The notes: generated by a model from the letters alone, not told the origin. 64,000 bases of DNA from Histomonas meleagridis 2922-C6/04-290x (GCA_020184695.1 JAANOX010000278.1:434001-498000), one strand, 5' to 3'. Positions 1-50,514 are shown, counted from the stretch's first letter. Numbers and translations: made by a program.

Positions 1-438
1 AAATAAACTTTATGATTTTTTAATAAACCCATTTGTCTGTATTCTGTTCAAGCCTTTTAAAAAAGTATTTGATTATCAATAAGGGTTGATTATATTCTGC
101 AGCATAATGTAGGAATGTTCGGAAATTAAAAAAGAAACCCCAAAATAACATTATAATTTCTGGAATTTTGAAATAAACCATGTCTCGAACTGTTAAATCT
201 GCATTTCCATCAATAAGTAGATCAGCTGCGAACTTATTTTTACGTTGAATGGCAAGAAAAATGGGAGCATTATGTAACAAAAATAAAAACCAAATGGATG
301 AAAATTAAGAAAACATCAAATGAAAATTAAGAAACTTTCGGTAAATTTACAAAAAACGACATTTAAATCACCTCCTTCCTCTTTGTATTTTTTTAGACTT
401 GCATTATCTTCGTTTATGATGAATTTAGTAAAATCCAT
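1..438 (-). CDS. Ankyrin-repeat protein interrupted by intervening sequences; 3' end runs off the window
   Basis: ATG at 438 gives MDFTKFIINEDNASLKKYKEEGGDLNV. In another frame follow HNAPIFLAIQRKNKFAADLLIDGNADLTVRD and RTFLHYAAEYNQPLLIIKYFF, which are ankyrin-like segments separated by T-rich inserts. Confidence 0.6.
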
Positions 439-19709: not shown

Positions 19710-20075
19710 TTTTTATAAAAAAAACGTTAACTTGACTTAAAAAGGCGCTCTCAAAATATTGACAATGCCCAGTTTTTGAGCACTTTACGTACCATTTTTT
19801 CTGCCTTTTATTTTCATCTGATAGCATTTGGAAAAAAATTCAAAAATAGGTTCATTTTATAATATTTATAGCTAGGCTAAGGTTTAAGAAAGGCACTAAT
19901 TTGGAAAATTAAAAATTTTTGCCTAATTTTAAAAATTAATTAAAAAATAAATAAATAATTAAAAAAATTTCTTGAAATTGTCAATAAAAATTGATTTGAT
20001 GAAAGCAAAAACAAGCTTTTTTTTTTTTTTTAAATGAAAACATTCCAAAACATTAAAACCAAAAACTTTTTAAAT

Positions 20076-20894
20076 TTAATTATTTTGTTCTTCTTCCTTT
20101 TGCTCTTCATTTTGTTGTTCTTCATTATTTTGTGGTGCTGCTAAAGCAGATGCAAATTGTTCGAGTTGAATATTATGAAGAGCATTTGGATCAATTTGAC
20201 CATTTTGTATAAGAGACGCCAGTGCTTCTGATGCCTCTGCTGTGATTTGAATATTTTGATTATTTAAAGCATCAAGATCTTGATTATGTTTAAGTAAAAG
20301 TTCTGTCATTGCTTGATCAACAATTGATGTTCCTTGGAAATCTTCTGGAGGAGTTCCTTTCTTCTTTAAAGTTGAATTCCATCGATTTTTAACGGAATTA
20401 TCTGTTCGACCAGGAAGAAGTTTAGCAATTTCTGCCCACTTCTTTCCAATCTGTTGGATGGATGATATGATAATTCGATCTTCTTCGGCTGTAAAAGGTT
20501 CCTTTTTAATCTCTGGATTCAAATGATTACACCATCTCTCCCTGCATTGTTTAGCAATTCTTCCTGGGAGGAGCTCAGCAAGTGAACACCATTTAGAAGG
20601 ACCATTGGTATTTACCCAATTTATAATAGTTTGATCTTCTGCATAACTCCATGAACCACGAACAATATTTGGATTTGCGACTTTCTTCCAATGAGCAAGA
20701 ACTTGTTTGCCAGTTCTGTTTGGAAAATTTGTTGCAATTTGTGCCCAATCTTCAGATTGTTGAACAAGTTTTGATAAAAGTTCATCTTCTTCTGGTGTCC
20801 ACTTTGATGCTCCTGATCGCATCCTGTTTCTAGTGCGAGTGGGAGCAAGTGCTGGTGGAGCTTCGTTTTGTTGTGTCGGAGCTTCTTCAAGCAT
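20076..20894 (-). CDS. Three-repeat Myb transcription factor
   Basis: [15 protein letters not shown]; [28 protein letters not shown]; [31 protein letters not shown]. Confidence 0.95.
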
Positions 20895-20906
20895 TTCTTG
20901 TGAAGC

Positions 20907-20945
20907 AACCGTTAAATTAATTGAAATTTAAGGACCGTTAACCGC
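20907..20945 (-). promoter_or_regulatory. Cluster of M3/Myb-type sites (TAACGGT twice, GCGGTT) just upstream of the Myb gene
   Basis: Plus strand aaccgtta at 20907-20914 and accgttaaccgc at 20934-20945, 13-50 bp upstream of the ATG. Confidence 0.45.
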
Positions 20946-21469
20946 TTTGCTGGTTTTTGGCGCCTTTTTTTGGGGGGTGTCAATAAATCATACAATACGA
21001 TTTCATGTTAATATTAATGGCGATATTGAAGATATTTGATATGTAAAGTTACGTGTTTATTTAACAAAATTCAATCGACTTTTTATTCAAATCATATTCA
21101 ATCAATTAACTCTGAAATTCAATCATAAACTTAACTCTGAAAGTCTTAGTCTATTCAACAAAACTTTAACTCAAAAAAAAAAATATTATATAAATGCAAT
21201 TGTAGATGCAAGATCAAAGGCATTTTTAAACTTAAGTTAATAGAATTTGAGTATGTTATTCTTTTGAAGATTTTTCCCACATTGTGTCTTTATATACATC
21301 TAATTTCACGATATATAAACTCATAATAAAAATTTTCATAAATTTATACCGTGACAACAAATATGTTTACAAGACATTTTTAAGATTAAAAAAAATCGAT
21401 TTCAATTTATTTAACAAAAATATGAAAATTCTAATTCTTTTTAAAGCGTTGAAAAAAAATCGGCCAATT

Positions 21470-21720
21470 TCTATTTAATAACAAAGCTGACTTTCGATCT
21501 GTTATTTTCTTTATATTCTTGAAGAAATTTAACGACTTCTGGTCTACGATGCTCAGATGCTTTCATACGTGCTGTTTGAAATATCTGCTTTCAAAACTTC
21601 CTTTCTATTATGGGTTAGACCGCAAATAACTACTTTTATTGAATTCTTCTGTGCATGAACATATTGTGTTTATATCAATTTATCCATCATAAGCTGCATT
21701 ATAAAGTATTGAAAATTGAG
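21470..21720 (-). pseudogene. Ankyrin-like coding relic
   Basis: Fragments LYNAAYDG*I and FQTARMKASEHRRPEVVKFLQEY in broken frames. Confidence 0.3.
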
Positions 21721-21870
21721 AATGATTTTTGTAGACATGTCAAAATTGACAAGTTTATTAATAACCAGTCTCAATTGACCTCATAGAAAATTTTCAAAAC
21801 AAATGGCGCCGATGCGCTGGTTCAGTATTCAAAAAATTAAATGATAAACCTTTGAAAAAACAATGATTTT

Positions 21871-21956
21871 TTTGGGGGGTCCGAATATTGATGATTCCCT
21901 TGTGTGCGTTCGGAGGGGCTGCTGCAGAATAGTCTTACAAAAAGTTCAGCACTGAG
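21871..21956 (+). ncRNA. Weak box C/D snoRNA candidate (GC-rich island)
   Basis: TGATGA at 21889-21894 and CTGA at 21952-21955 flank a GC-rich interior with a tccgaa/ttcgga stem. No convincing D'/C' boxes. Confidence 0.2.
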
Positions 21957-21994
21957 TAAAGAATTTGCTAAAAATGTTTATTATAATTAAAATT

Positions 21995-23692
21995 TCAAAT
22001 AGAAGGAAACGGCTGGCTTTCGCACATGATGTCTTGGAGACTTCCCAAGTTATTTGCCAAATAGACAATTGCATTTTGTTCAATTGAATCATTTGTATCT
22101 TTAATGAACTTTTGCTTTTCAACATCAATTTCATGAATAACTCTTTTCGAAATTGAATCTCTTTTTTGAATTGTTTCGTTATGTCGCGTTTGAAAGTCGT
22201 TTTCTAGTACGGAAACATTTTTAGCAATTTCATCATTTTCTTTCGAAGTAGAATTTGTTACTTGTTGATGCTGTTGAGATAACTGCAATAGAACTCTATG
22301 ATGATCTTTAACCCTCGAAATGATATCCTGTAATTCCGCATTTATTTGTGCTTCGAGACCATTAATTGAGTCGAAAGTTTGTTGTTGATATATACCTAAA
22401 ATTGATTCGATTTTCTTAATCGACATTTCTTTCTCTTTGTTCTTATCAGGTTTTGTTATTTCTAATGCGTTTTCTTTTTGTATTATTGGGTTTGTTATGA
22501 ATATTTCATCTTTTTTGGATGCGTAAATTCTTTTCTGTTGTTTTCGTTCAGGTAATTTGGGTTTAATTGTCGTTTGTTGATGTTCCATTTTTAAGTTTTG
22601 TTGGAATTGTGTGCAACGCTTCGAGAATTCGGTTTGAATTGATTTGGGACAATTCTCAACAAGAAACTGAAACTTTAATGGTTTCTTTGTTGTGATTTTC
22701 TCAAACGCAATAAGTTTCTCTTTTGTTGTGAATCGTATTGTTTTGTTACTTGTTGAATTTTCGCATATTTGTGAAAACCTAAACACAAATACGTCGGGTA
22801 AATCAATGGATTTATGTATTATACATGCAACTAATGTGTCTTGGTTTATGTCAAGCCAACCTTCGCCTTCAATTTTAACTCCGTTACAGATAAAACTAGT
22901 AAATTTGACATGAAGAATATTCTTTGACATCGGGATTTTAGCTCTTTGATTAATTAACATAATAAATGAATGAATCGATTCACGAAAATTTGTTGCATTA
23001 ATCGATGAAAAAGAAGATTCAAATTGGCCAAATACATTTTGAAGATGTGGTGACTTTGTAAGACATGACTTAACTCTCCATGTAAATTCTGTGACAAGCA
23101 TTTGCGTTAATGAATCATTAGCTTCTTGTATTAATTTTAAACATTCCGAAATATGAACTTCACTAAAATATTGTGAAAATAATTGTCGATTCTTTGGACT
23201 TTGTGAAATTAATGTAATTAATAATTGAAATAATGATGATAAAACTGATTCTGGAAGAACTAAATTAAACCCTAATTCTCGGGAAAAACGTTCAATGATT
23301 TCTGATAGTATGATATTCTTCATATCTGGATTATTTGAACATATCGTACTAACAACTTTAAGAAAATCTGCAGTTTCATTTTCAAATTGTGCTTTTTCAT
23401 CAAATAGTAACACATTTGTAAGTAAGCCTATATCAGGTACAAGTTCAATGGGTAATGTATCTTTGACAATTTTTAGAAAAAATGAAAATGCCTTTATATG
23501 TTCAGGTTCATTTGGAATATAAGGAAATATTAGCTTTAAATTCATGATTCCTCTTCGATCAAGTCTTCCATGTTTTGTTGAAAACAATGAATTCCTGAAT
23601 TTTTTCCAGAATTCATGGCTGCTCGGATCAATTGGATTGCTCAACAGCGCTTGTATTGATCCCGCTTCATTATTGCCTCCAAGTGTCGACAT
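21995..23692 (-). CDS. Putative SYCP2/Rec10/ASY3-type meiotic chromosome-axis protein (ARM-like, PH-like, C-terminal coiled coil)
   Basis: LIQEANDSLTQMLVTEFTWRV, FSSINATNFRESIHSFIMLIN and GWLDIN parallel recalled SYCP2 motifs (ILDAGDYDLQV..EAL.R, FKRI...EF...C..F.NLVN, WIDFN) in the same order. Confidence 0.6.
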   Translation of the reverse strand: MSTLGGNNEAGSIQALLSNPIDPSSHEFWKKFRNSLFSTKHGRLDRRGIMNLKLIFPYIPNEPEHIKAFSFFLKIVKDTLPIELVPDIGLLTNVLLFDEKAQFENETADFLKVVSTICSNNPDMKNIILSEIIERFSRELGFNLVLPESVLSSLFQLLITLISQSPKNRQLFSQYFSEVHISECLKLIQEANDSLTQMLVTEFTWRVKSCLTKSPHLQNVFGQFESSFSSINATNFRESIHSFIMLINQRAKIPMSKNILHVKFTSFICNGVKIEGEGWLDINQDTLVACIIHKSIDLPDVFVFRFSQICENSTSNKTIRFTTKEKLIAFEKITTKKPLKFQFLVENCPKSIQTEFSKRCTQFQQNLKMEHQQTTIKPKLPERKQQKRIYASKKDEIFITNPIIQKENALEITKPDKNKEKEMSIKKIESILGIYQQQTFDSINGLEAQINAELQDIISRVKDHHRVLLQLSQQHQQVTNSTSKENDEIAKNVSVLENDFQTRHNETIQKRDSISKRVIHEIDVEKQKFIKDTNDSIEQNAIVYLANNLGSLQDIMCESQPFPSI

Positions 23693-24142
23693 CAAAACGA
23701 AATAAATGTTTTAACATCAAACATTTGATGCGAATTAACCGTTTTTACACAAAAAGTGAAAAAAGAAAATAACAAAAAATTATCAAATAAAAAACATTCT
23801 TGAAGAGAAATTCTGAATTAAATATGAAATATTGGATCATCTTCAATGAGAGCGTTGCTCCTTCCGAAAGAATCAATTGATGAGTTAGCTGATAAAAATT
23901 ATAATTTGAATCACACCATATGCTGTCTTTCCCATCTTCTATTCCAATACTTGAAGCAAAAAAATTCTGTACAAAATTTGAATTCATAATTTTGTTTTTA
24001 TGAGAAAATTTTATTAATGTGGTCATACTCATTTGTGAAAAGTGATTTTTTTTAAGTTGTATTCTGAATATTTTAAGGAAAATATAAATTTTTAAAAATT
24101 TTTGATCACAATAATCATTATTAAAAAAACATATTTTGATAA

Positions 24143-24200
<58 letters not shown>
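24143..24200. repeat. Compound microsatellite (TA)n(CA)n
   Basis: Directly visible. Confidence 0.97.
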
Positions 24201-24205
<5 letters not shown>

Positions 24206-24215
24206 AATTACAAAT

Positions 24216-25422
24216 TTATTGAGTAATATTAGGTAATTTTGGTGGGAAAAAAGCATAATTATATTGCAATTGATACAAATATTTAATGTATGCCATCCAA
24301 GAAAATGCCCAAAATGCTTCGCCTATTTCAGGTTTATTGCCTGGTCTATATCGAAATGCTTTTGCGGCAATTTTTAGTTCTTTTCTCATTTCGAGAATTT
24401 GGTCATTCGAATATTCTAAAAGTTGTTCATTTAATTTATTACTTTTATTTTCATTTATACGAATTGTAAATTTAGAATAATTCAATAAAACATTCTCAAA
24501 TGGAAGCTGTGGTGGATAAAAAATCAAAAACAAATACAGGAATACACCCAAAGTAAACAGAATCATAAAATAATTTGTTAAGATATGTCATATCTTTCTT
24601 TTGAAAAACGCAAAAGTCCGAATTACCATAGTATTTTAGCAGTTTTGTATTGGTTCCGAACACTGCTTTTTGTTTAGAATCATGAGAAATTGAAGTTCCA
24701 ATTTGAGATTTTCCTTTTGAATTTGTTTGATTTATGGAAAATTCATGAATAAATATAGTGTGTTTGCGGGTTTGAGTCCAATTAACTTCATCAAAAGGAT
24801 GATCAGGGAAATATGAAACTTGTGGAATAATTATGTTGCGATGACCATACCAGCCTCGGAGAGTTTCGCCGATTTTAGGATTTGGCAACGCAGCAATTGC
24901 ATTTTTTGTGTAGATATATTTGCTAATTTGTAAATTTTCTAAATTGAGATCAAAGTTTGATACAATAACATGATCTAGACCAAGTCTTTTATTATACCAA
25001 GGATTATTAGAACGAACTTCTTTGACGTAATTTAAGGTATCTTTCATATCTTGGAAGGATTGTGTTACAAATGGAAGAAAGAATAAATTTGCTTCTTTTG
25101 GATTTTTTGTAATAATAGGTGATAACATTATTTCACTGCGAAGTTCATCTTCAACAGAATATTGAAAATCTTTGTTATCAGAATTATTAATTTGTTTCAA
25201 ATAATTAGAAACATTATAGCAATATATTTTTATTGGAGGGAAGTGATTATTGAAAAGCTCTATATTTTGAGAATTCTCAGTAAGGGGAATTGATTCCTCA
25301 TTAACTTGTTTAAAATCAAATGGAGTTGATATCATAATAAAAGCGAAAAGGATAAAAATTATAAGAACTGCAATAATTGCATGCTCAAGTCCTTCTACTT
25401 TGGCATCCCGACGCAAGTACAT
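24216..25422 (-). CDS. Exostosin-like GT47 glycosyltransferase split by a 1-nt frameshift at about 24520
   Basis: N-terminal TM; KIYCY, NPKEANLFFLPF, GLDHVIV, SDFC and GCIPV. Removing one base of the 6-nt run at 24518-24523 gives GCIPVFVFDFYPPQLPFE and joins the two ORFs. Confidence 0.8.
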
Positions 25423-25467
25423 TTCAGTTCCCAAAATTCAGAGTCTTTTGATCAGAACCGTTATTAT

Positions 25468-27946
25468 ATGGATTCAAAATGCCTTCCAACAACACTTTCC
25501 TATAAATATGACTTCATTGAAATACCTGAACATGAACAAAATGAACAAGTAGGAGGAATGGAAGTACCTGTTTATATTTCACCTAAGAAAACACCTTTAG
25601 ATAAATATTACAACTCTATTGAAGGTACCATATTTGCTACAAGTAATGCCAAACCAGTAATCAATTGTTTTACCCAAGATAAGTTTCTACCAATATTTAG
25701 ACCTCAAGATCAACCTGATTTATCAACAGTTCCAAATCCAAAAAATTACGCTTCATTTCATGATTTTTCAATGGCCTTTGAACAGTGGTATCGAAAAGCA
25801 ATAGTGTTTTTTTCACCTGTTATATTACCAAATCCATTATCAGGAGAATTTTACCTTATTTCAATGCCAAAGATATTTGAAAGGGATGAACGAAACAATC
25901 CAGGTCGTTTCCGTACATTTAAACCAGAACTTTGGCCTCTTCTTCCACAAAATTATCTAGATATGGTTGATAAAATATATGATTCAAATAGTAAAATTGA
26001 TCCAGATGAACTTTTTAAAGAGCTTCTTAGCACAGGAAACTAATGATAGCGTGTGTAATCAATTTGATTGGGCACCAAAAAATATTAAATATCTCGATCG
26101 AGCTTCTATGAGTCTTCATGAACTATTTGTTGCAGACGTTGACAAATACGCTATCAAACCCAAAACTGATTCAATTTTATGTGTTTTTGATTTAGATGGC
26201 AAACAATTTGTCGATGAAATGATCAATTATGGAATCAAATGGGACTCAATAGAAAAGAATGAAATCATTCGGCCAAATAATTTTCTCAGAGGTGTACCAG
26301 AAAAAGACACACACAATGGTCAGATGTTAATAAGTCGCCGAAAATTTGATTTCAATTTAATTATTAACTTACTTAAATTCAATTACACAAGACAACAATT
26401 TTGCTCTTTAATGGAGACTCAAGTACCAGCTTTGAAAACAAGCGCAGCTATTGCATCTTCTGGAATAATCTCAACAAACGAATTTTTCGGTTTTATCGCG
26501 TCACTTTCTGTCACTTCACCTTATCACAAATACCGTTTGTCGAACTTTTTGTATGCAATTGTCAGAAATAACCCCGACGATACGAAGCTTCTTGATTTTC
26601 TATTGGCAGACGACCGTTTACCTTTTTTCTATCATTTCATTTCTTTAGTGTTTTATAACACACCAAAGAATAAAAATCTTATACCTATTATCAGTGATCT
26701 TAAGAACGAACAAAATTTGAAAATTAACAAATTTTATCTTCTTGAAAATTTTGTCACATTATTTAATGAATGTCTTGGCTATAAATTTTATACCAAATCG
26801 ATTGAAATATGTCATAAGTTAGGATATGAATGTTCTAAATTACTTACTGATCGAAGTTACATTGAGAAAATCAGATCATCACCTGATGAAGATTCATATA
26901 AAGTATTAATGATGATAATTCAAAGTGAAACACCACAACTTCAACGATTACTTTTGGGGAATAACTTCTATCAATGGGTTTCCAAGAATGAGAAATATTC
27001 CAAAATACTTTGGTCAATAGCACATTCTTCGACTATTGAAACGTTTTGTAATATGTTTTCTAAATATGGATTTAATCCACAAGAACTTGAAACGTATTCA
27101 CCTGAAGTCACACGTAACATTTGTTATTTCATTAATAATGTTTGTAATTATATTATTAATTTACCAAACAATTTACATGTTGATTTTTCAGGTGTTTCTT
27201 TAAATTCTATTTTTAAGTCTATTATTATGAGTTCTAATGAGAACATTTCGAAGTTATTAGTTCCGATTTCATTAATAATGAGTGACCCGAAGTTAATTTC
27301 TGATTTTAATTCGAATAAATATCAAGAATTACTTCTTGGTAATTGTGCGATATTATGTGCTGATCTGAATTCGTTATCATTCCCATTATGTTGTGAGCGT
27401 ATTAAAGCATTAACATCATTCACTAAAATCGAAAATTGTTGTGTTACGATGACCGAAATTACTGATTTTAATGAAACAATTGTTGCACTTTTACTTAAAG
27501 ATCAAGATATTACGAGAATGAAAAGTTATTGGAAATTCATTCAACTATTATCGCGTTATCCGAATGTTCTTTCGAACATATTAAGTGCACCGAATGTTAA
27601 AAAATCAATTTCGACAATCATTAAAATGGATAACCCTTTGTTATCGAGAAAATTTTTCGAGTTTTCGAATTATTTGTTTAATAAAAATAAAAACCAAAAG
27701 CTGAAGAAGTTGTTGTTGGATGCAGTAATGCCTTCGATAGGAAGAATCGTAACTATATACCAAACATTTGGCGGAATATATAAAAATGATATAGCACTAA
27801 AACATAAATTCATTTCCTTCTTGTGCGCAGTGTTCGCAATGAAAGGGCAGGAAACAGAGGAATTCATTCAGGCGTTCATTAAGCATTCGAAGGAAAATAG
27901 GTCGGCAATAGAAAAGAAACTGAATTCGTTGAAAAAGAATATGTGA
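25468..27946 (+). CDS. Hypothetical protein with helical C-terminal region, split by a frameshift near 26010-26040
   Basis: Two overlapping same-strand ORFs (25381-26043 and 25967-27946) with continuous coding-like composition. The likely ATG is at 25468. Confidence 0.5.
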
Positions 27947-45283: not shown

Positions 45284-46495
45284 ATGAGTGAGACACAAAA
45301 CGCTGATCAGACAAAAAAACATCCAGCAATTCTTGATATTGACATGAATCACTCATCGAAAGATTCGATAGTTTTATCAATTTTTCTTTTATTTTTCTTT
45401 GCATTTGCCATGTTTAATAATATATTTGATTCCGAAGTATATGTAGAAGAATCAACATTTCCTTTTGATACAAATTGCCAAACAAAATTAAAGCATGTTG
45501 CATTTGAATTAAGTTCAATGAAAATGGATAATTGTCCAATGAAGATCGATATTTCATTTAAAATTAATAATAACATTATTAAACCTTTTTATAACATCTC
45601 ATTTGATGTTGCAATGACTCATACATATCAAAGCAAGTCATATTTATTCCATCGTTTTCAGCATAGATATGCTTTATTTGGTTCATCCAAGCCTGGTATG
45701 GTCACTGATCCAGTTACTATTTATACAGGTATGGTTCCCAAATATGATTCTCTCTTTATATCATTAACTGCTCGCGAAGATATCAGTGAATTCAGTTCAT
45801 TAGTTGCCACTGTTTATTATGATCCATCACCCACTGATTTGTCATATTTCTTTACTATTTTTGCATGTGTTTCATGTACTATTTTACTCATCAATCACAT
45901 CATCAATTTTTGGTATCATCGAAAAGAAATCATACCAAAAGAATTCTATGTTACCTTTGTTTTATTGGTCATTGGAGCCATTATCTTTTGGGTATTAATG
46001 TTTTCTGGCTTGAATTCGTTTTTTGGCGAATCATTGGTTTCGGTTTATTCTGCCGCATTGAGAGGGTTCTCAATTTGGGTCATTTTGAATTTGGTTGTAA
46101 AGGACACATCAAAGCTGAACATCATCATCATCCTGTTGTCTTCAGCAATTGCCGCAGTTGAGGTAAGTGAGGCGGGTATAATATATGCATCTGTTTCGGA
46201 GCTAACAAAATTAGATTTCCCTTTAATTATTTTGTACGATTGCATTTTCCTTGTTACAGCCGTTTACGGAAATATGAAAATAGAGGAGAAGAAGAAATCC
46301 AAATTATCCAAATATTTGGTGTTGGGAACTCTAATGATGTTTTATTGTACTTTTATATCACTGAGATTAAGTGATAGTAACTATGATAGAATGAGAAATA
46401 CCATTCAGTTCTTTAAAAGAGTTGTGGTATTCGGTTATTTAATGTGCATTGTGTCATTCCATGTGATTCAGATTCAGAAGGTGAAAGGTGAATAA
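45284..46495 (+). CDS. Multi-pass membrane protein (one TM, lumenal domain, about 7 TM), TMEM181/Wntless-like topology
   Basis: Hydropathy pattern only; likely ATG at 45284. Confidence 0.5.
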   Translation: MSETQNADQTKKHPAILDIDMNHSSKDSIVLSIFLLFFFAFAMFNNIFDSEVYVEESTFPFDTNCQTKLKHVAFELSSMKMDNCPMKIDISFKINNNIIKPFYNISFDVAMTHTYQSKSYLFHRFQHRYALFGSSKPGMVTDPVTIYTGMVPKYDSLFISLTAREDISEFSSLVATVYYDPSPTDLSYFFTIFACVSCTILLINHIINFWYHRKEIIPKEFYVTFVLLVIGAIIFWVLMFSGLNSFFGESLVSVYSAALRGFSIWVILNLVVKDTSKLNIIIILLSSAIAAVEVSEAGIIYASVSELTKLDFPLIILYDCIFLVTAVYGNMKIEEKKKSKLSKYLVLGTLMMFYCTFISLRLSDSNYDRMRNTIQFFKRVVVFGYLMCIVSFHVIQIQKVKGE

Positions 46496-47049
46496 GTTTT
46501 TGTGGATTATTTTTTTGTAGTTTGATCAAACAGAAATGTTAAATAAAAAAATGTTTAAAAAAACGATTTTTCATCGAACATACGCAGTACCTTTAACTTA
46601 ATTTATTGATGAAAATATTTTCACCAGATAGAAGGGAAGATCAGACATGTGATATGAAATGGAGCGTTCCGAAGTAAATTTGATTTAAAATCTTTACGAA
46701 TTCTTTCATTATGACTTCTATATATAACATGGTTTTCATAACATTTTGATACGAGAGAATGTGTGATTAAAATCAATAGATTGACCTTTGTTACAATCAA
46801 CTTCAAGTACAGAGCGAACAAAAAGATGAATTGGTTAGTAAAAATGAATGTTTTTAAAGATTTATTAAAAAGTAGGTATTGTTTGATTTGGAAGTTGGGC
46901 TTTGCTTTACCCGATAAGAGCAGTAAAAATCGACATTAAAAAGTGTCAAACAGTAAAACGCTCAAATTTTGAATTGATAGATACGATAATTCAATTGTTG
47001 TAACGCTCTTCACTTCACCCAATGCATTTTTTATTTTTACTCATAAATA

Positions 47050-49635
47050 TTATTCCTTAACCAAAAATGATGGTGGCCTTACATGTTGTCTTACACTATA
47101 TCTTCTTCTTACCGCTACTCCTGGTTCGCGAGGTTGTTCTCTCACGGTTTGCGCTGGTGTCTCCGTTTGCACGTCATCGTTCGTGAGTATACTTGGCGGC
47201 GGCGCTCCTCCGATGACAGTGCCAGAACGGCGCTTGTTCATTGGGACACCCATCGGCCCTCCCATCGGTGCGCCCATTGGCATTCCCATGGGCCTTCCCA
47301 TCGGAGTGTCCTTGAACATAACAAGACGCTCTCTGATGCTTCCGCGCCGCTCAGGAGGATTATTGTTCCGATTCGGCGCTGGCGGATTTTCGCGTGTCTG
47401 TGGCGGTGGCGCTGCAGGCGGCGTTGACGATGGCGATGGTGATGGCTGTAGAGCTGGTGGCGTTCTTTGGAATGCTGACATTCGGTTCCGAACTGATGAT
47501 GATGAAGAAGAAGGTGCGGGTGAGGGTGCGGGCGATGGCGCAGCATTGTTTCGCTGGAAGGCAGAGAGCCTATCACGAATGGAGCTGCCGGATGAGGATG
47601 CTGGCGATGGTTTAGGTGGCTGTGCGCGGAGTGTTGGCTGGGGAGGCGGCTGTGCTGTTGGCGATGGTGCTGGAGTAAACTGTGTGCGGAGCCTTGGCGA
47701 AGGAGGTGCTGCAGTAGGCTGTTGCGGCGGCGGTGCTGTTGGTGGAGGTGCTGGTGTAAACTGTGTGCGAAGCTTTGGCGAAGGAGGTGCTGCGGTAGGC
47801 TGTTGCGGTGGTGCTGGAGTAAATTGTGTGCGGAGCCTTGGTGAAGGCGGTGCTGCGGTAGGTTCATGTTGAGGTGGTGCTGAAGTAGATGGAGCTGGCT
47901 TTGACGGTTGTGTTGTCGGCGCAGGTGTTGCTGTTGTTGCTGGCTTAGGAGGCTGTGTATGCTGTGTTGATGTTGATGATGTTGTCGCTGTTGTTGTTGG
48001 TTTAGGAGGCTGTGTATGCTGTGTTGATGTTGTTGATGGTGTTGTTGTTGGTTTAGGAGGCTGTGCGTGCTGTGTTGATGTTGTTGTTGGTTTAGGAGGC
48101 TGTGTATGCTGTGTTGATGTTGTTGATGTTGTTGTTGTTGGCTTAGGAGGCTGTGTATGCTGTGTTGATGTTGATGATGTTGATGGTGTTGTTGTTGGTT
48201 TAGGAGGCTGTGCGTGCTGTGTTGATGTTGTTGATGTTGTTGTTGTTGGTTTAGGAGGCTGTGTATGCTGTGTTGATGTTGTTGATGTTGTTGTTGTTGG
48301 TTTAGGAGGCTGTGCGTGCTGTGTTGATGTTGTTGTTGGTTTAGGAGGCTGTGTATGCTGTGTTGATGTTGTTGATGGTGTTGTTGTTGGTTTAGGAGGC
48401 TGTGCGTGCTGTGTTGATGTTGTTGTTGGTTTAGGAGGCTGTGTATGCTGTGTTGATGTTGTTGATGGTGTTGTTGTTGGTTTAGGAGGCTGTGCGTGCT
48501 GTGTTGATGTTGTTGTTGGTTTAGGAGGCTGTGTATGCTGTGTTGATGTTGTTGATGTTGTTGTTGTTGGCTTAGGAGGCTGTGTATGCTGTGTTGATGT
48601 TGATGATGTTGATGGTGTTGTTGTTGGTTTAGGAGGCTGTGTATGCTGTGTTGATGTTGTTGATGTTGTTGTTGTTGGTTTAGGAGGCTGTGCGTGCTGT
48701 GTTGATGTTGTTGATGGTGTTGTTGTTGGTTTAGGAGGCTGTGTATGCTGTGTTGATGTTGTTGATGGTGTTGTTGCTGGCTTAGGAGGCTGTGTATGCT
48801 GTGTTGATGTTGATGGTGTTGTCGCTGTTGTTGTTGGTTTAGGAGGCTGTGTGCGAAATGAATTTGCGGGTGCAGGTGCTGTATGCTGTGGTGCGGCGTT
48901 ATTTTTCCAAGCAGCAAGCCTATCACGCATGGACATACCTGTGGACGAAGAAGTTGTTGATGGTTTTGACTGTACTGTTGTTGGCGTTGGTTTTGACTGT
49001 ACTGGAGTTGTTGGTTTTGTCTGTTCACCTGTTGTCGAAGTTTTTGGTTTTGCTTGTGTTGTTGTTGCTGATGTCGTAGGTGTTGTTGGCTTTGATTGTA
49101 CTGTTGTTGTAGATGTTGTTGGCTTTGATTGTACTGTTGTTGTAGATGTTGTTGGCTTCGATTGTGCTGTTGATGTTGCTGGTGTTGCTGGTTTTGTTTG
49201 TGCTGTAGTTGTTCTTGAATTTTGTTGTGGTGTTGAAGCATTACTTCTTCCTTGGAATACTGAAAGTCTGTCTTTCATAGACATTCCTGTTGATGTTCCT
49301 GTTGAAGTTGGTGGGTGTGAGGATGTTGTTTGTTGTTGGCGTTGCTGGACTGTATTAGTTTGACTAGGAGTTGATGGATGTTGTGCTTGCGTTGGTTTCG
49401 AAACATTTGATTGAGGCGTTGCTTGCGCCGGTTGATTTGTTGTATTAGCCGTATACGCCTGTGGTGGCTTTGGTTGAGTTGAAGCAGATGCATTGCTTTT
49501 TCCTGAGAAAGCTGATATTCTATCTCTCATAGAAGTTCCTGTGGATCGAAAAGCCGATGCCTGACCAGGCTGCGGAGGGTTTCCTTGGTTCGCATTATTT
49601 TGGAAAGCATTAATCCGATCCCTGAAAGAACTCAT
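47050..49635 (-). CDS. Low-complexity T/Q/P-rich protein with tandem repeats and a recurring S(M/I)RDRLxxF motif
   Basis: 861-aa ORF with 19 QPPKP units, three PTAAPPSP(R/K)LRTQFTPAP units, seven RDR-type motifs and a GMPMG tail. Confidence 0.8.
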   Translation of the reverse strand: MSSFRDRINAFQNNANQGNPPQPGQASAFRSTGTSMRDRISAFSGKSNASASTQPKPPQAYTANTTNQPAQATPQSNVSKPTQAQHPSTPSQTNTVQQRQQQTTSSHPPTSTGTSTGMSMKDRLSVFQGRSNASTPQQNSRTTTAQTKPATPATSTAQSKPTTSTTTVQSKPTTSTTTVQSKPTTPTTSATTTQAKPKTSTTGEQTKPTTPVQSKPTPTTVQSKPSTTSSSTGMSMRDRLAAWKNNAAPQHTAPAPANSFRTQPPKPTTTATTPSTSTQHTQPPKPATTPSTTSTQHTQPPKPTTTPSTTSTQHAQPPKPTTTTSTTSTQHTQPPKPTTTPSTSSTSTQHTQPPKPTTTTSTTSTQHTQPPKPTTTSTQHAQPPKPTTTPSTTSTQHTQPPKPTTTSTQHAQPPKPTTTPSTTSTQHTQPPKPTTTSTQHAQPPKPTTTTSTTSTQHTQPPKPTTTTSTTSTQHAQPPKPTTTPSTSSTSTQHTQPPKPTTTTSTTSTQHTQPPKPTTTSTQHAQPPKPTTTPSTTSTQHTQPPKPTTTATTSSTSTQHTQPPKPATTATPAPTTQPSKPAPSTSAPPQHEPTAAPPSPRLRTQFTPAPPQQPTAAPPSPKLRTQFTPAPPPTAPPPQQPTAAPPSPRLRTQFTPAPSPTAQPPPQPTLRAQPPKPSPASSSGSSIRDRLSAFQRNNAAPSPAPSPAPSSSSSSVRNRMSAFQRTPPALQPSPSPSSTPPAAPPPQTRENPPAPNRNNNPPERRGSIRERLVMFKDTPMGRPMGMPMGAPMGGPMGVPMNKRRSGTVIGGAPPPSILTNDDVQTETPAQTVREQPREPGVAVRRRYSVRQHVRPPSFLVKE
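47935..48855 (-). repeat. Coding minisatellite: 19 units of 13/17/19/20 codons ((T/A)QPPKPTTT...STQH)
   Basis: Counted from the translation; DNA core ttaggaggctgtg(ta/cg)tgctgtgttgatg. Confidence 0.95.
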
Positions 49636-50514
49636 GTTTGCGCGTAATAAATGTCAGTTATTAATTGAAATTATCGTCATATAAACGTTCGAAAATGTCC
49701 TTTATCAATTTGAAAAGCGGCAAAAATTAGTTTCTTTCAATTTATTATGGGGAAAATTAAATGACTTTAACTTCAATTTGAAGAAGAGATAAAACATTAA
49801 AACTCAAATTTAAGTATGCACGCTACTTGGAGTTTTTAACTTTAAAGAAACTTTTTTATTATAATATTATTTCGAATTAACCCAAATTATTTATCATATA
49901 GATATGTATTAGGTTATTTGTTCTGGAATTTTCCTTTGGAATGGCTTCAATTTTGGATTTTGAGCGAAAATAATGGATTCTTGTTAAATCACAATCATCC
50001 AATTGGATTCATTAATGAAAGTTATTTAATCGTTTTGCACGGTTTTCGTGAGTCCCTTTAAAAGTGATGACTGTAATGTTACAGTTTTTAGGGGGGGTTA
50101 AGAAAATATTAACTCAGTCTGTTTGCATAAGAAAAATTCAAATAACATGTCTGTTTATTTAACCGTTATTTCTTTGCTTTGCAATTTCTAGCAAAAAAAT
50201 TTGCCTTTTAATGTGCAAAAATAAAAATGAGAATTTTAATAAGTTATAATCGTTATAAAATGTTATAACATTTTTTGTTTTAAGATTTTATAAATGATTA
50301 AATGTACTCAGTGAAATTCGTTTTTGGAAAAAAATGAGTTAGCTTTTTTGTTCGTTAAGCATGGCTTTGTTCTTTTTGGCTACGTTTTTGGTTGGCTGGT
50401 TTTGCAAAGCACAAAAGGTGAACTTCCTGGTGAAGTAAATTTGAGAGCAAAACCGTCTTTAAAGCACTTTTGATTGATGTGATAGTTGATGTTAAATCAC
50501 TTCATTTTTATATT

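Follow-up and report, generated by a model that had tools for sequence, protein, structure and literature searches.

The genome of Histomonas meleagridis 2922-C6/04-290x was found to encode a probable short-form chromosome-axis core protein of the SYCP2 type (SYCP2/Red1/Rec10/ASY3), an assignment to which we give a probability of about 0.8. The gene lies on the minus strand at 21995..23692 of a 64,000-nucleotide stretch (GCA_020184695.1 JAANOX010000278.1:434001-498000, that is, C278:434001-498000 of the 281-contig, 43.13-Mb assembly; G+C content about 30%), which is called the window here and to which all coordinates given without a contig name refer. The analysis showed that the 565-amino-acid (aa) product has an SYCP2-like N-terminal module, a disordered linker with a conserved motif and a long C-terminal helix, and that Hop1 is encoded in the same genome. 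Homology to the SYCP2-type proteins as such is very likely, since the fold match, a transitive chain of sequence similarities and the overall layout agree, while the further step, that the protein is a core of the meiotic axis and recruits Hop1, is slightly favoured by analogy with known systems. An original prediction, made from the sequence alone, had named the gene a probable axis core of the SYCP2/Rec10/ASY3 family; the family was borne out by fold, sequence chain and layout, but the corresponding Pfam models did not match.

Extent of the gene

One open frame occupies 21995..23695 (minus strand), and its ATG at 23692 gives a complete coding sequence with 565 codons and a stop. NCBI's model of this gene (P0001) is shortened to 368 aa and begins at M198 (window position 23101). 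The full 565-codon frame was taken as the real gene because the orthologues, which are 36–53% identical to it, aligned over 96–99% of the query, from its N-terminus or close to it, and shared more than 120 invariant columns. Judged by these alignments, the 565-aa frame is the real gene and the 368-aa model is truncated. All strings quoted in the original prediction were located in the 565-aa protein: residues 187–206 read IQEANDSLTQMLVTEFTWR, residues 228–248 read FSSINATNFRESIHSFIMLIN, GWLDIN stands at 278–283 and KPKLPERKQQKRIYA at 377–391.

Predicted fold of the N-terminal half

Residues 1–365 were modelled by AlphaFold2 (AF2) with a four-sequence alignment, and the model reached a predicted local distance difference test score (pLDDT) of 86.6 and a predicted template modelling score of 0.79. 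Its first part is an ARM-like helical repeat domain (residues 11–250, 22943..23662, minus strand; pLDDT mostly 80–96), which could be aligned with its counterpart in mouse SYCP2 (5IWZ). The 13 helices, spanning residues 13–250, agree with the helical N-terminus claimed beforehand. They are followed by seven strands and, at 350–364, a last helix (260–364 in all), forming a PH-like (Spt16M-like) beta sandwich with closing helix (residues 258–364, 22601..22921, minus strand) that includes GWLDIN and falls within the 5IWZ alignment of model range 5..365. When the model was compared with the PDB by Foldseek, as the original prediction had proposed, 5IWZ (the N-terminus of mouse SYCP2) ranked first over the full length (expectation value, E, 1.6e-6; template modelling score, TM, 0.60/0.59) and every other match had a TM below 0.3, so the structural match to the SYCP2 N-terminus, on whose absence the prediction was to fall, was present. 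The independent VIA-align run against 48,161 representative chains also placed 5iwz_A first (Z 22.0, 331 residues aligned, model range 5..365), followed by WapL (Z 11.3) and then by many generic ARM or PH proteins at 10–11. Among solved structures 5IWZ was thus the only whole-length match, and PH-domain structures made up the remaining partial matches of both programs.

AF2, Foldseek and VIA-align therefore all point to ARM-like repeats with a PH-like domain right behind them, in the arrangement of SYCP2. The mouse and Histomonas proteins share the two-domain fold and the mutual arrangement of the domains (Z 22.0, 331 of 365 residues aligned), but their identity is 12–14% with a root-mean-square deviation of 5.0–6.5 Å, and their lengths are far apart (565 aa compared with about 1,500 aa for SYCP2, according to Tromer et al. 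2021, PMC8131943). In the ESM Atlas the closest shapes were a 624-aa Euglenozoan cluster (DUF8079 + PH_30; TM 0.76) and a basidiomycete cluster (0.75); by language-model features the same Euglenozoan cluster scored 0.97, SYCP2 ARLD+SLD clusters 0.92 and a Red1 cluster 0.83.

A transitive sequence link to SYCP2

A word search with the protein returned three orthologue clusters, and the same kind of search with the 30-sequence family alignment returned just the four proteins already known. More distant relatives were found with profile A3, which represents the N-terminal 365 residues of the orthologues and the paralogue described below and was scored against 1.84 billion representative proteins, 41 of which matched at E up to 0.001. 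The named matches included TRFO_10263 (603 aa) and TRFO_02696 (895 aa) of Tritrichomonas foetus, TVAG_072080 of Trichomonas vaginalis (829 aa, E 3.5e-24) and two outsiders, PROFUN_14956 of Planoprotostelium fungivorum (E 1.2e-5) and transcript P0048 of Entosiphon sulcatum (E 3.9e-5). The Entosiphon sequence provided the bridge to SYCP2: hhalign joined A3 and P0048 over query residues 138–296 (Prob 95.5, E 1.4e-8), and phmmer with P0048 against the PDB gave mouse SYCP2, 5IWZ_A, as the sole significant match (E 1.3e-4; the next PDB match had E 0.14), with P0048 residues 125–267 aligned to SYCP2 155–299. The region spanned by both steps runs from the final ARM repeats into the first part of the PH domain. 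The criterion that Tromer et al. (2021, PMC8131943) found best for SYCP2-type proteins was similarity at E < 1e-2 across the final ARM repeats as well as the PH domain, together with a C-terminal coiled coil; the Histomonas protein shows the sequence similarity transitively only, through Entosiphon P0048.

The most conserved core, residues 149–248 (22949..23248, minus strand), covers the last ARM repeats and is seen in the paralogue, Entosiphon and SYCP2 alignments. It contains the motifs D..LTQ....E..WR and F..I....F......F..LIN, which belong to the three motif matches to SYCP2 listed in the original prediction. Through Entosiphon, the first corresponds to SYCP2 'D-Y-E-L-Q-V-G-I-V-E-A-L-C-R', with D193, Q197, E202 and R206 matched, and the second to 'F-I-A-N-A-F-K-E-I-K-D-C-E-F-...-F-L-N-L-V-N', with N248 at the L-V-N of SYCP2. 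Across the 30 family members Q197, E202, R206 and N248 vary hardly or not at all. The third element, GWLDIN, aligned with the Entosiphon protein only, and the SYCP2 alignment stops before it, so that two of the three matches were upheld and no sequence link from GWLDIN to SYCP2 could be established.

Linker and C-terminal helix

The folded part is followed by a linker (residues 369–423, 22424..22588, minus strand) for which the full-length model indicates disorder (pLDDT < 50) and which is mildly basic, with 14 K+R compared with 9 D+E in the 60 residues 365–424, as had been proposed. Within it the family alignment revealed a conserved short linear motif, K377–K394 (22511..22564, minus strand), a candidate closure motif for a HORMAD protein. 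Its core, K-R-I-Y-A at 387–391, is located 23 residues past the N-terminal domain, and the pattern [KR][KR][IV][YF]A occurs 15–60 residues past this domain in 14 of the 20 short-clade rows listed, this gene included. The members of the long clade carry the form Y-[TA]-P-[ED]-[RK]-W-E-L-[ED]-x-F-[DE]-E-L-K directly before the helix, and the hidden Markov model (HMM) aligned the two forms with each other. The closure motifs of Red1 and SYCP2 sit right after the folded N-terminal domain (PMC6349405), which is the same relative position as that of the Histomonas motif. Among 26 parabasalid Hop1 proteins, no C-terminal tail resembled the linker motif convincingly; some of these tails carry E-N-x-x-[IL]-[YF]-x-x-A-K, and Histomonas Hop1 ends with K-I-A-A-K-Y.

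Residues 425–558 (22019..22420, minus strand) were modelled as a single amphipathic helix of 134 residues, uninterrupted and proline-free (pLDDT 75–83), which is presumed to be an oligomerising coiled coil. The amphipathic periodicity was 3.6–3.8 residues, reached by 2, 3 and 0.4 per 100 shuffles at periods of 3.6, 3.67 and 3.8, respectively, and a local heptad signal was detected at 439–501. A coiled coil at the C-terminus is thus plausible from the model: the long helix, its periodicity and the local heptads agree in part with the coiled coil of the original prediction, but a single heptad register was not found. Searches of PDB sequences with the protein and with profiles A3 and A4 gave coiled-coil-type matches only, the best being apolipoprotein A-IV (E 0.003, family profile), and the coiled-coil HMMs of SYCP2 and SYCP3 likewise cross-match apolipoprotein A-IV (Tromer et al. 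2021, PMC8131943).

A second family member and two parabasalid clades

In the genome exactly two family members were detectable, the 565-aa gene and a 749-aa long-form SYCP2-type paralogue, GPJ56_006366 (KAH0789864.1, annotated as hypothetical; G000:C153:835362-837611 = L003:2863-5112, plus strand). The two proteins are 34% identical over residues 149–248 (E 9e-14). GPJ56_006366, an orthologue of TRFO_02696 that clusters with TVAG_072080, has an ARM+PH N-terminal domain, a lysine/proline-rich linker of 200 residues, the sequence Y-T-P-E-R-W-E-L-E-T-F-D-E-L and finally a C-terminal helix.

A tree computed by maximum likelihood from the first 400 residues of 34 rows, and midpoint-rooted, fell into two groups with 100/99 support each. 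The short clade comprises 19 rows of 452–603 aa, among them the 565-aa gene and TRFO_10263, and the second group of 15 rows contains the long clade of 13 (98/98 support, 468–895 aa; with GPJ56_006366, TRFO_02696 and TVAG_072080) and two non-parabasalid rows. Since it is on the side of the long clade that both non-parabasalid sequences branch off, the short clade looks derived, but the rooting is unreliable, as the tree was midpoint-rooted and long branches meet.

Meiotic genes of the same genome and transcription

Hop1 of Histomonas (326 aa; G000:C128:87137-88114 = L004:1444-2421, plus strand) was identified by PF02301 (217 bits) and is also named 'Hop1 [Histomonas meleagridis]' by NCBI; its best solved relative is HORMAD1 (E 7.5e-34). 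It is a short protein made up of the HORMA domain and a small C-terminal helical, winged-helix-like part. The second Pfam domain of its animal relatives, PF20826, is absent from the parabasalid Hop1 proteins, whose tails end in a conserved helix of the E-N-x-x-[IL]-x-x-[IL]-x-x-K-Y or I-Y-x-E-A-K type. A Spo11-type TP6A_N protein and Mnd1 are encoded in the same genome.

Part of the gene was contained in four small sequencing runs of one 2023 study, whose library type was guessed as RNA and whose contigs carry no strand, end or level information. Over 20000–25800 the contigs, placed after skipping the repeats at 24131–24214, were bounded by genes, with a depth of about 50–240 at a neighbouring Myb gene and 23–38 at a neighbouring GT47 gene and 0 at the intergenic 20970–21163; gene-bounded contigs of very different depth speak for RNA. 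The 565-aa gene was covered at 21964–22904 with a depth of 4–13 in all four runs, and one X1 contig, 23203–23397, lies upstream of the truncated NCBI start. This suggests low-level transcription of the gene with 3′-biased coverage.

Proposed mode of action

By analogy with Red1, SYCP2 and ASY3 (PMC6349405), the C-terminal helix would oligomerise into an axis filament, either as a homo-oligomer or together with the 749-aa paralogue. The K-R-I-Y-A motif, just past the N-terminal domain, may be captured by the safety belt of the Hop1 HORMA domain, as are the motifs of Red1 and SYCP2 (PMC6349405), and the N-terminal module, again by analogy, could dock on chromatin or cohesin. Taken together, these steps would build the axis of meiosis during a sexual or parasexual stage yet to be observed.

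Alternative explanations

Several results weigh against this reading and are set against the fold and the sequence chain here. In Pfam, hmmscan found nothing for the 565-aa protein at E up to 10 (neither SYCP2_ARLD, PF18581, nor SYCP2_SLD, PF18584, nor Red1, PF07964), and for the orthologues, the paralogue and 29 family members it found no SYCP2, Red1 or PH family at E up to 0.1–1. The profile match to SYCP2_ARLD and SYCP2_SLD to which the original prediction had looked was hence not obtained for the protein or for any of 29 relatives, and the protein is outside the narrow families PF18581, PF18584 and PF07964, though inside the wider superfamily. Neither phmmer nor hmmsearch with the protein and profiles A3 and A4 gave a direct 5IWZ match among the PDB sequences. 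A crude single-register heptad test over the C-terminal helix was not significant, with no global register, and a search of the Histomonas genome with this helix for an SYCP3-type partner returned nothing below E 0.17. The ESMFold2-based complex prediction of the Hop1 HORMA domain (1–240) with the linker (364–425) scored just 0.01, the no-answer level of the tool, and 0.00, and was counted neither way. The probable transcripts come from runs without a stage record and are compatible with a non-meiotic role. To our knowledge, meiosis has never been seen in H. meleagridis.

The main competing explanation is an SYCP2-type paralogue with a non-meiotic chromosome job, for instance at the centromere or kinetochore, which would leave the 749-aa paralogue as the true axis protein; the short clade would then be parabasalid-specific, derived and not, or not only, meiotic, and K-R-I-Y-A would be a docking site. 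We consider this unlikely. Repurposing of exactly this kind has been documented (Tromer et al., PMC8131943), and precedents are known in the kinetoplastid KKT17/KKT18 and in the centromeric SYCP2L of vertebrates. The tree, too, speaks for it, with two deep parabasalid clades (100/99 support) and the non-parabasalid pair joining the long-clade side, but it was midpoint-rooted and long branches meet in it. The top ESM feature match (0.97) and the shape match with TM 0.76 are Euglenozoan rather than animal SYCP2, but this Euglenozoan cluster may be either KKT17/18 or plain SYCP2-type. Probable transcripts were present in four runs, but the depth of the runs is low and their stage and library type are not on record; moreover, low-level expression of meiotic genes has been reported in vegetative Trichomonas cells, which counts against a non-meiotic job. 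If true, a non-meiotic short clade would mean that the axis core of the synaptonemal complex had been repurposed independently a second time, in parallel with KKT17/KKT18.

It is much less probable that an unrelated ARM + PH scaffold, such as a protein like the ASK1 central region or a RhoGEF-type adaptor, converged on the SYCP2 layout. The identity to 5IWZ of just 12–14% and the lack of a Pfam match would fit such a case, both folds are very common, and ASK1, FERM and DH/PH proteins appeared lower in the Foldseek list. However, these alternatives reached TM 0.17–0.28 or Z ≤ 11 over one domain, whereas 5IWZ spans both domains and their mutual arrangement at Z 22; the Entosiphon chain lands on SYCP2 alone, with coinciding conserved residues, and the disordered linker with the long C-terminal helix is of the kind by which Tromer et al. 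(PMC8131943) included proteins in the family. A generic ARM+PH adaptor was rejected on the ground that the match in fold is specific and extends over the two domains. Least probable of all is a decaying or non-functional remnant, to which the NCBI annotation of only the C-terminal 368 aa and the sparse RNA contigs over the 5′ half could point. The 565-codon frame is open, however, its orthologues are 36–53% identical over 96–99% with 120+ invariant columns, the N-terminal half folds confidently in the model, and the X1 contig at 23203–23397 lies upstream of the truncated start. A pseudogene was thus rejected, the frame being open and conserved.

Relation to known axis proteins

The original prediction knew of no reported parabasalid axis-core orthologue, and in this it was mistaken: three SYCP2-type paralogues in T. 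vaginalis, as well as orthologues in Giardia, have been published (Tromer et al. 2021, Open Biol, PMC8131943). Its conclusion of an ancient origin of the axis core agrees with the literature but had already been drawn in the same paper, where the axis core is present in metamonads and dates to the last eukaryotic common ancestor (PMC8131943). Our literature search found no other paper that ties SYCP2 to parabasalids, and none on Histomonas. The present work therefore confirms and extends that of Tromer et al. (2021) and is not the discovery of an ancient axis core; what it adds is the Histomonas member with its corrected truncated model, an independent structural confirmation, the two clades across many parabasalid sequences, the shared linker motif and the probable transcription.

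The T. vaginalis SYCP2-type paralogues I–III and the Histomonas gene are alike in phylum, gene family and the ARM + PH + coiled-coil criteria, but three paralogues stand against two detectable ones in Histomonas, and the identified T. vaginalis member, TVAG_072080, belongs to the long clade, whereas the 565-aa gene belongs to the short clade (452–603 aa). With fungal Red1/Rec10 the Histomonas protein has in common a folded N-terminal domain, an adjoining motif, a disordered linker and a C-terminal helix, which is self-associating in Red1 (PMC6349405). The ESM feature score to Red1 is 0.83, but the Pfam Red1 model does not match, and a closure-motif function and the assembly of the Histomonas protein into tetramers or filaments are suggested by analogy. 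The search of the Histomonas genome with the C-terminal helix gave no SYCP3-type partner; Red1 manages without such a subunit, as it forms homotetramers (PMC6349405). KKT17/KKT18, parts of the kinetoplastid kinetochore, are of similar size and have the same ARM + PH + coiled-coil layout; they are subunits of the KKT16 complex, whereas the likeness of the Histomonas protein consists only of the ESM Atlas match to an unnamed Euglenozoan cluster.

With this gene H. meleagridis, the blackhead agent of turkeys without a known sexual cycle, gains a probable axis-core gene beside Hop1, Spo11 and Mnd1. As a group, the parabasalids keep two old SYCP2-type lineages with a common linker motif, which offers a defined peptide, with its candidate partner, for assays of Hop1 binding, while the two proteins could be localised in relatives open to transfection.

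Neighbouring features of the window

The gene is flanked by a three-repeat Myb gene (20076–20894) and an exostosin GT47 gene (24216–25434), and we see no functional link to either of them. Upstream of the gene, the stretch 23745–24200 (minus strand) contains a (TG/CA)n and (TA)n microsatellite, which is read as MCVCVCVCVCVCVYIYIYIF in a spurious open reading frame (ORF).

In the GT47 gene (24216–25434, minus strand), seven letters at about 24516 were absent from all four sequencing runs. If they are dropped, the ORFs 24496..25434 (312 aa, Exostosin GT47, E 4e-21) and 24216..24566 (116 aa) are joined into one of 404 codons including the stop (about 403 aa). The letters fall in a near-tandem T-rich 7-mer that reads TTTTTGA/TTTTTTA in the coding direction; an indel of the assembly or the strain is therefore likelier than an intervening sequence, and the GT47 gene model of the genome at 24216–25434 is probably wrongly split. 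Farther away, the composition of 46001–50000 differs from the rest of the window, with a G+C of 0.41–0.43 compared with 0.25–0.34 in the background, a very strong GC skew of +0.25 to +0.51 and an AT skew of −0.43; this part could be repetitive, or coding with a strong strand bias.

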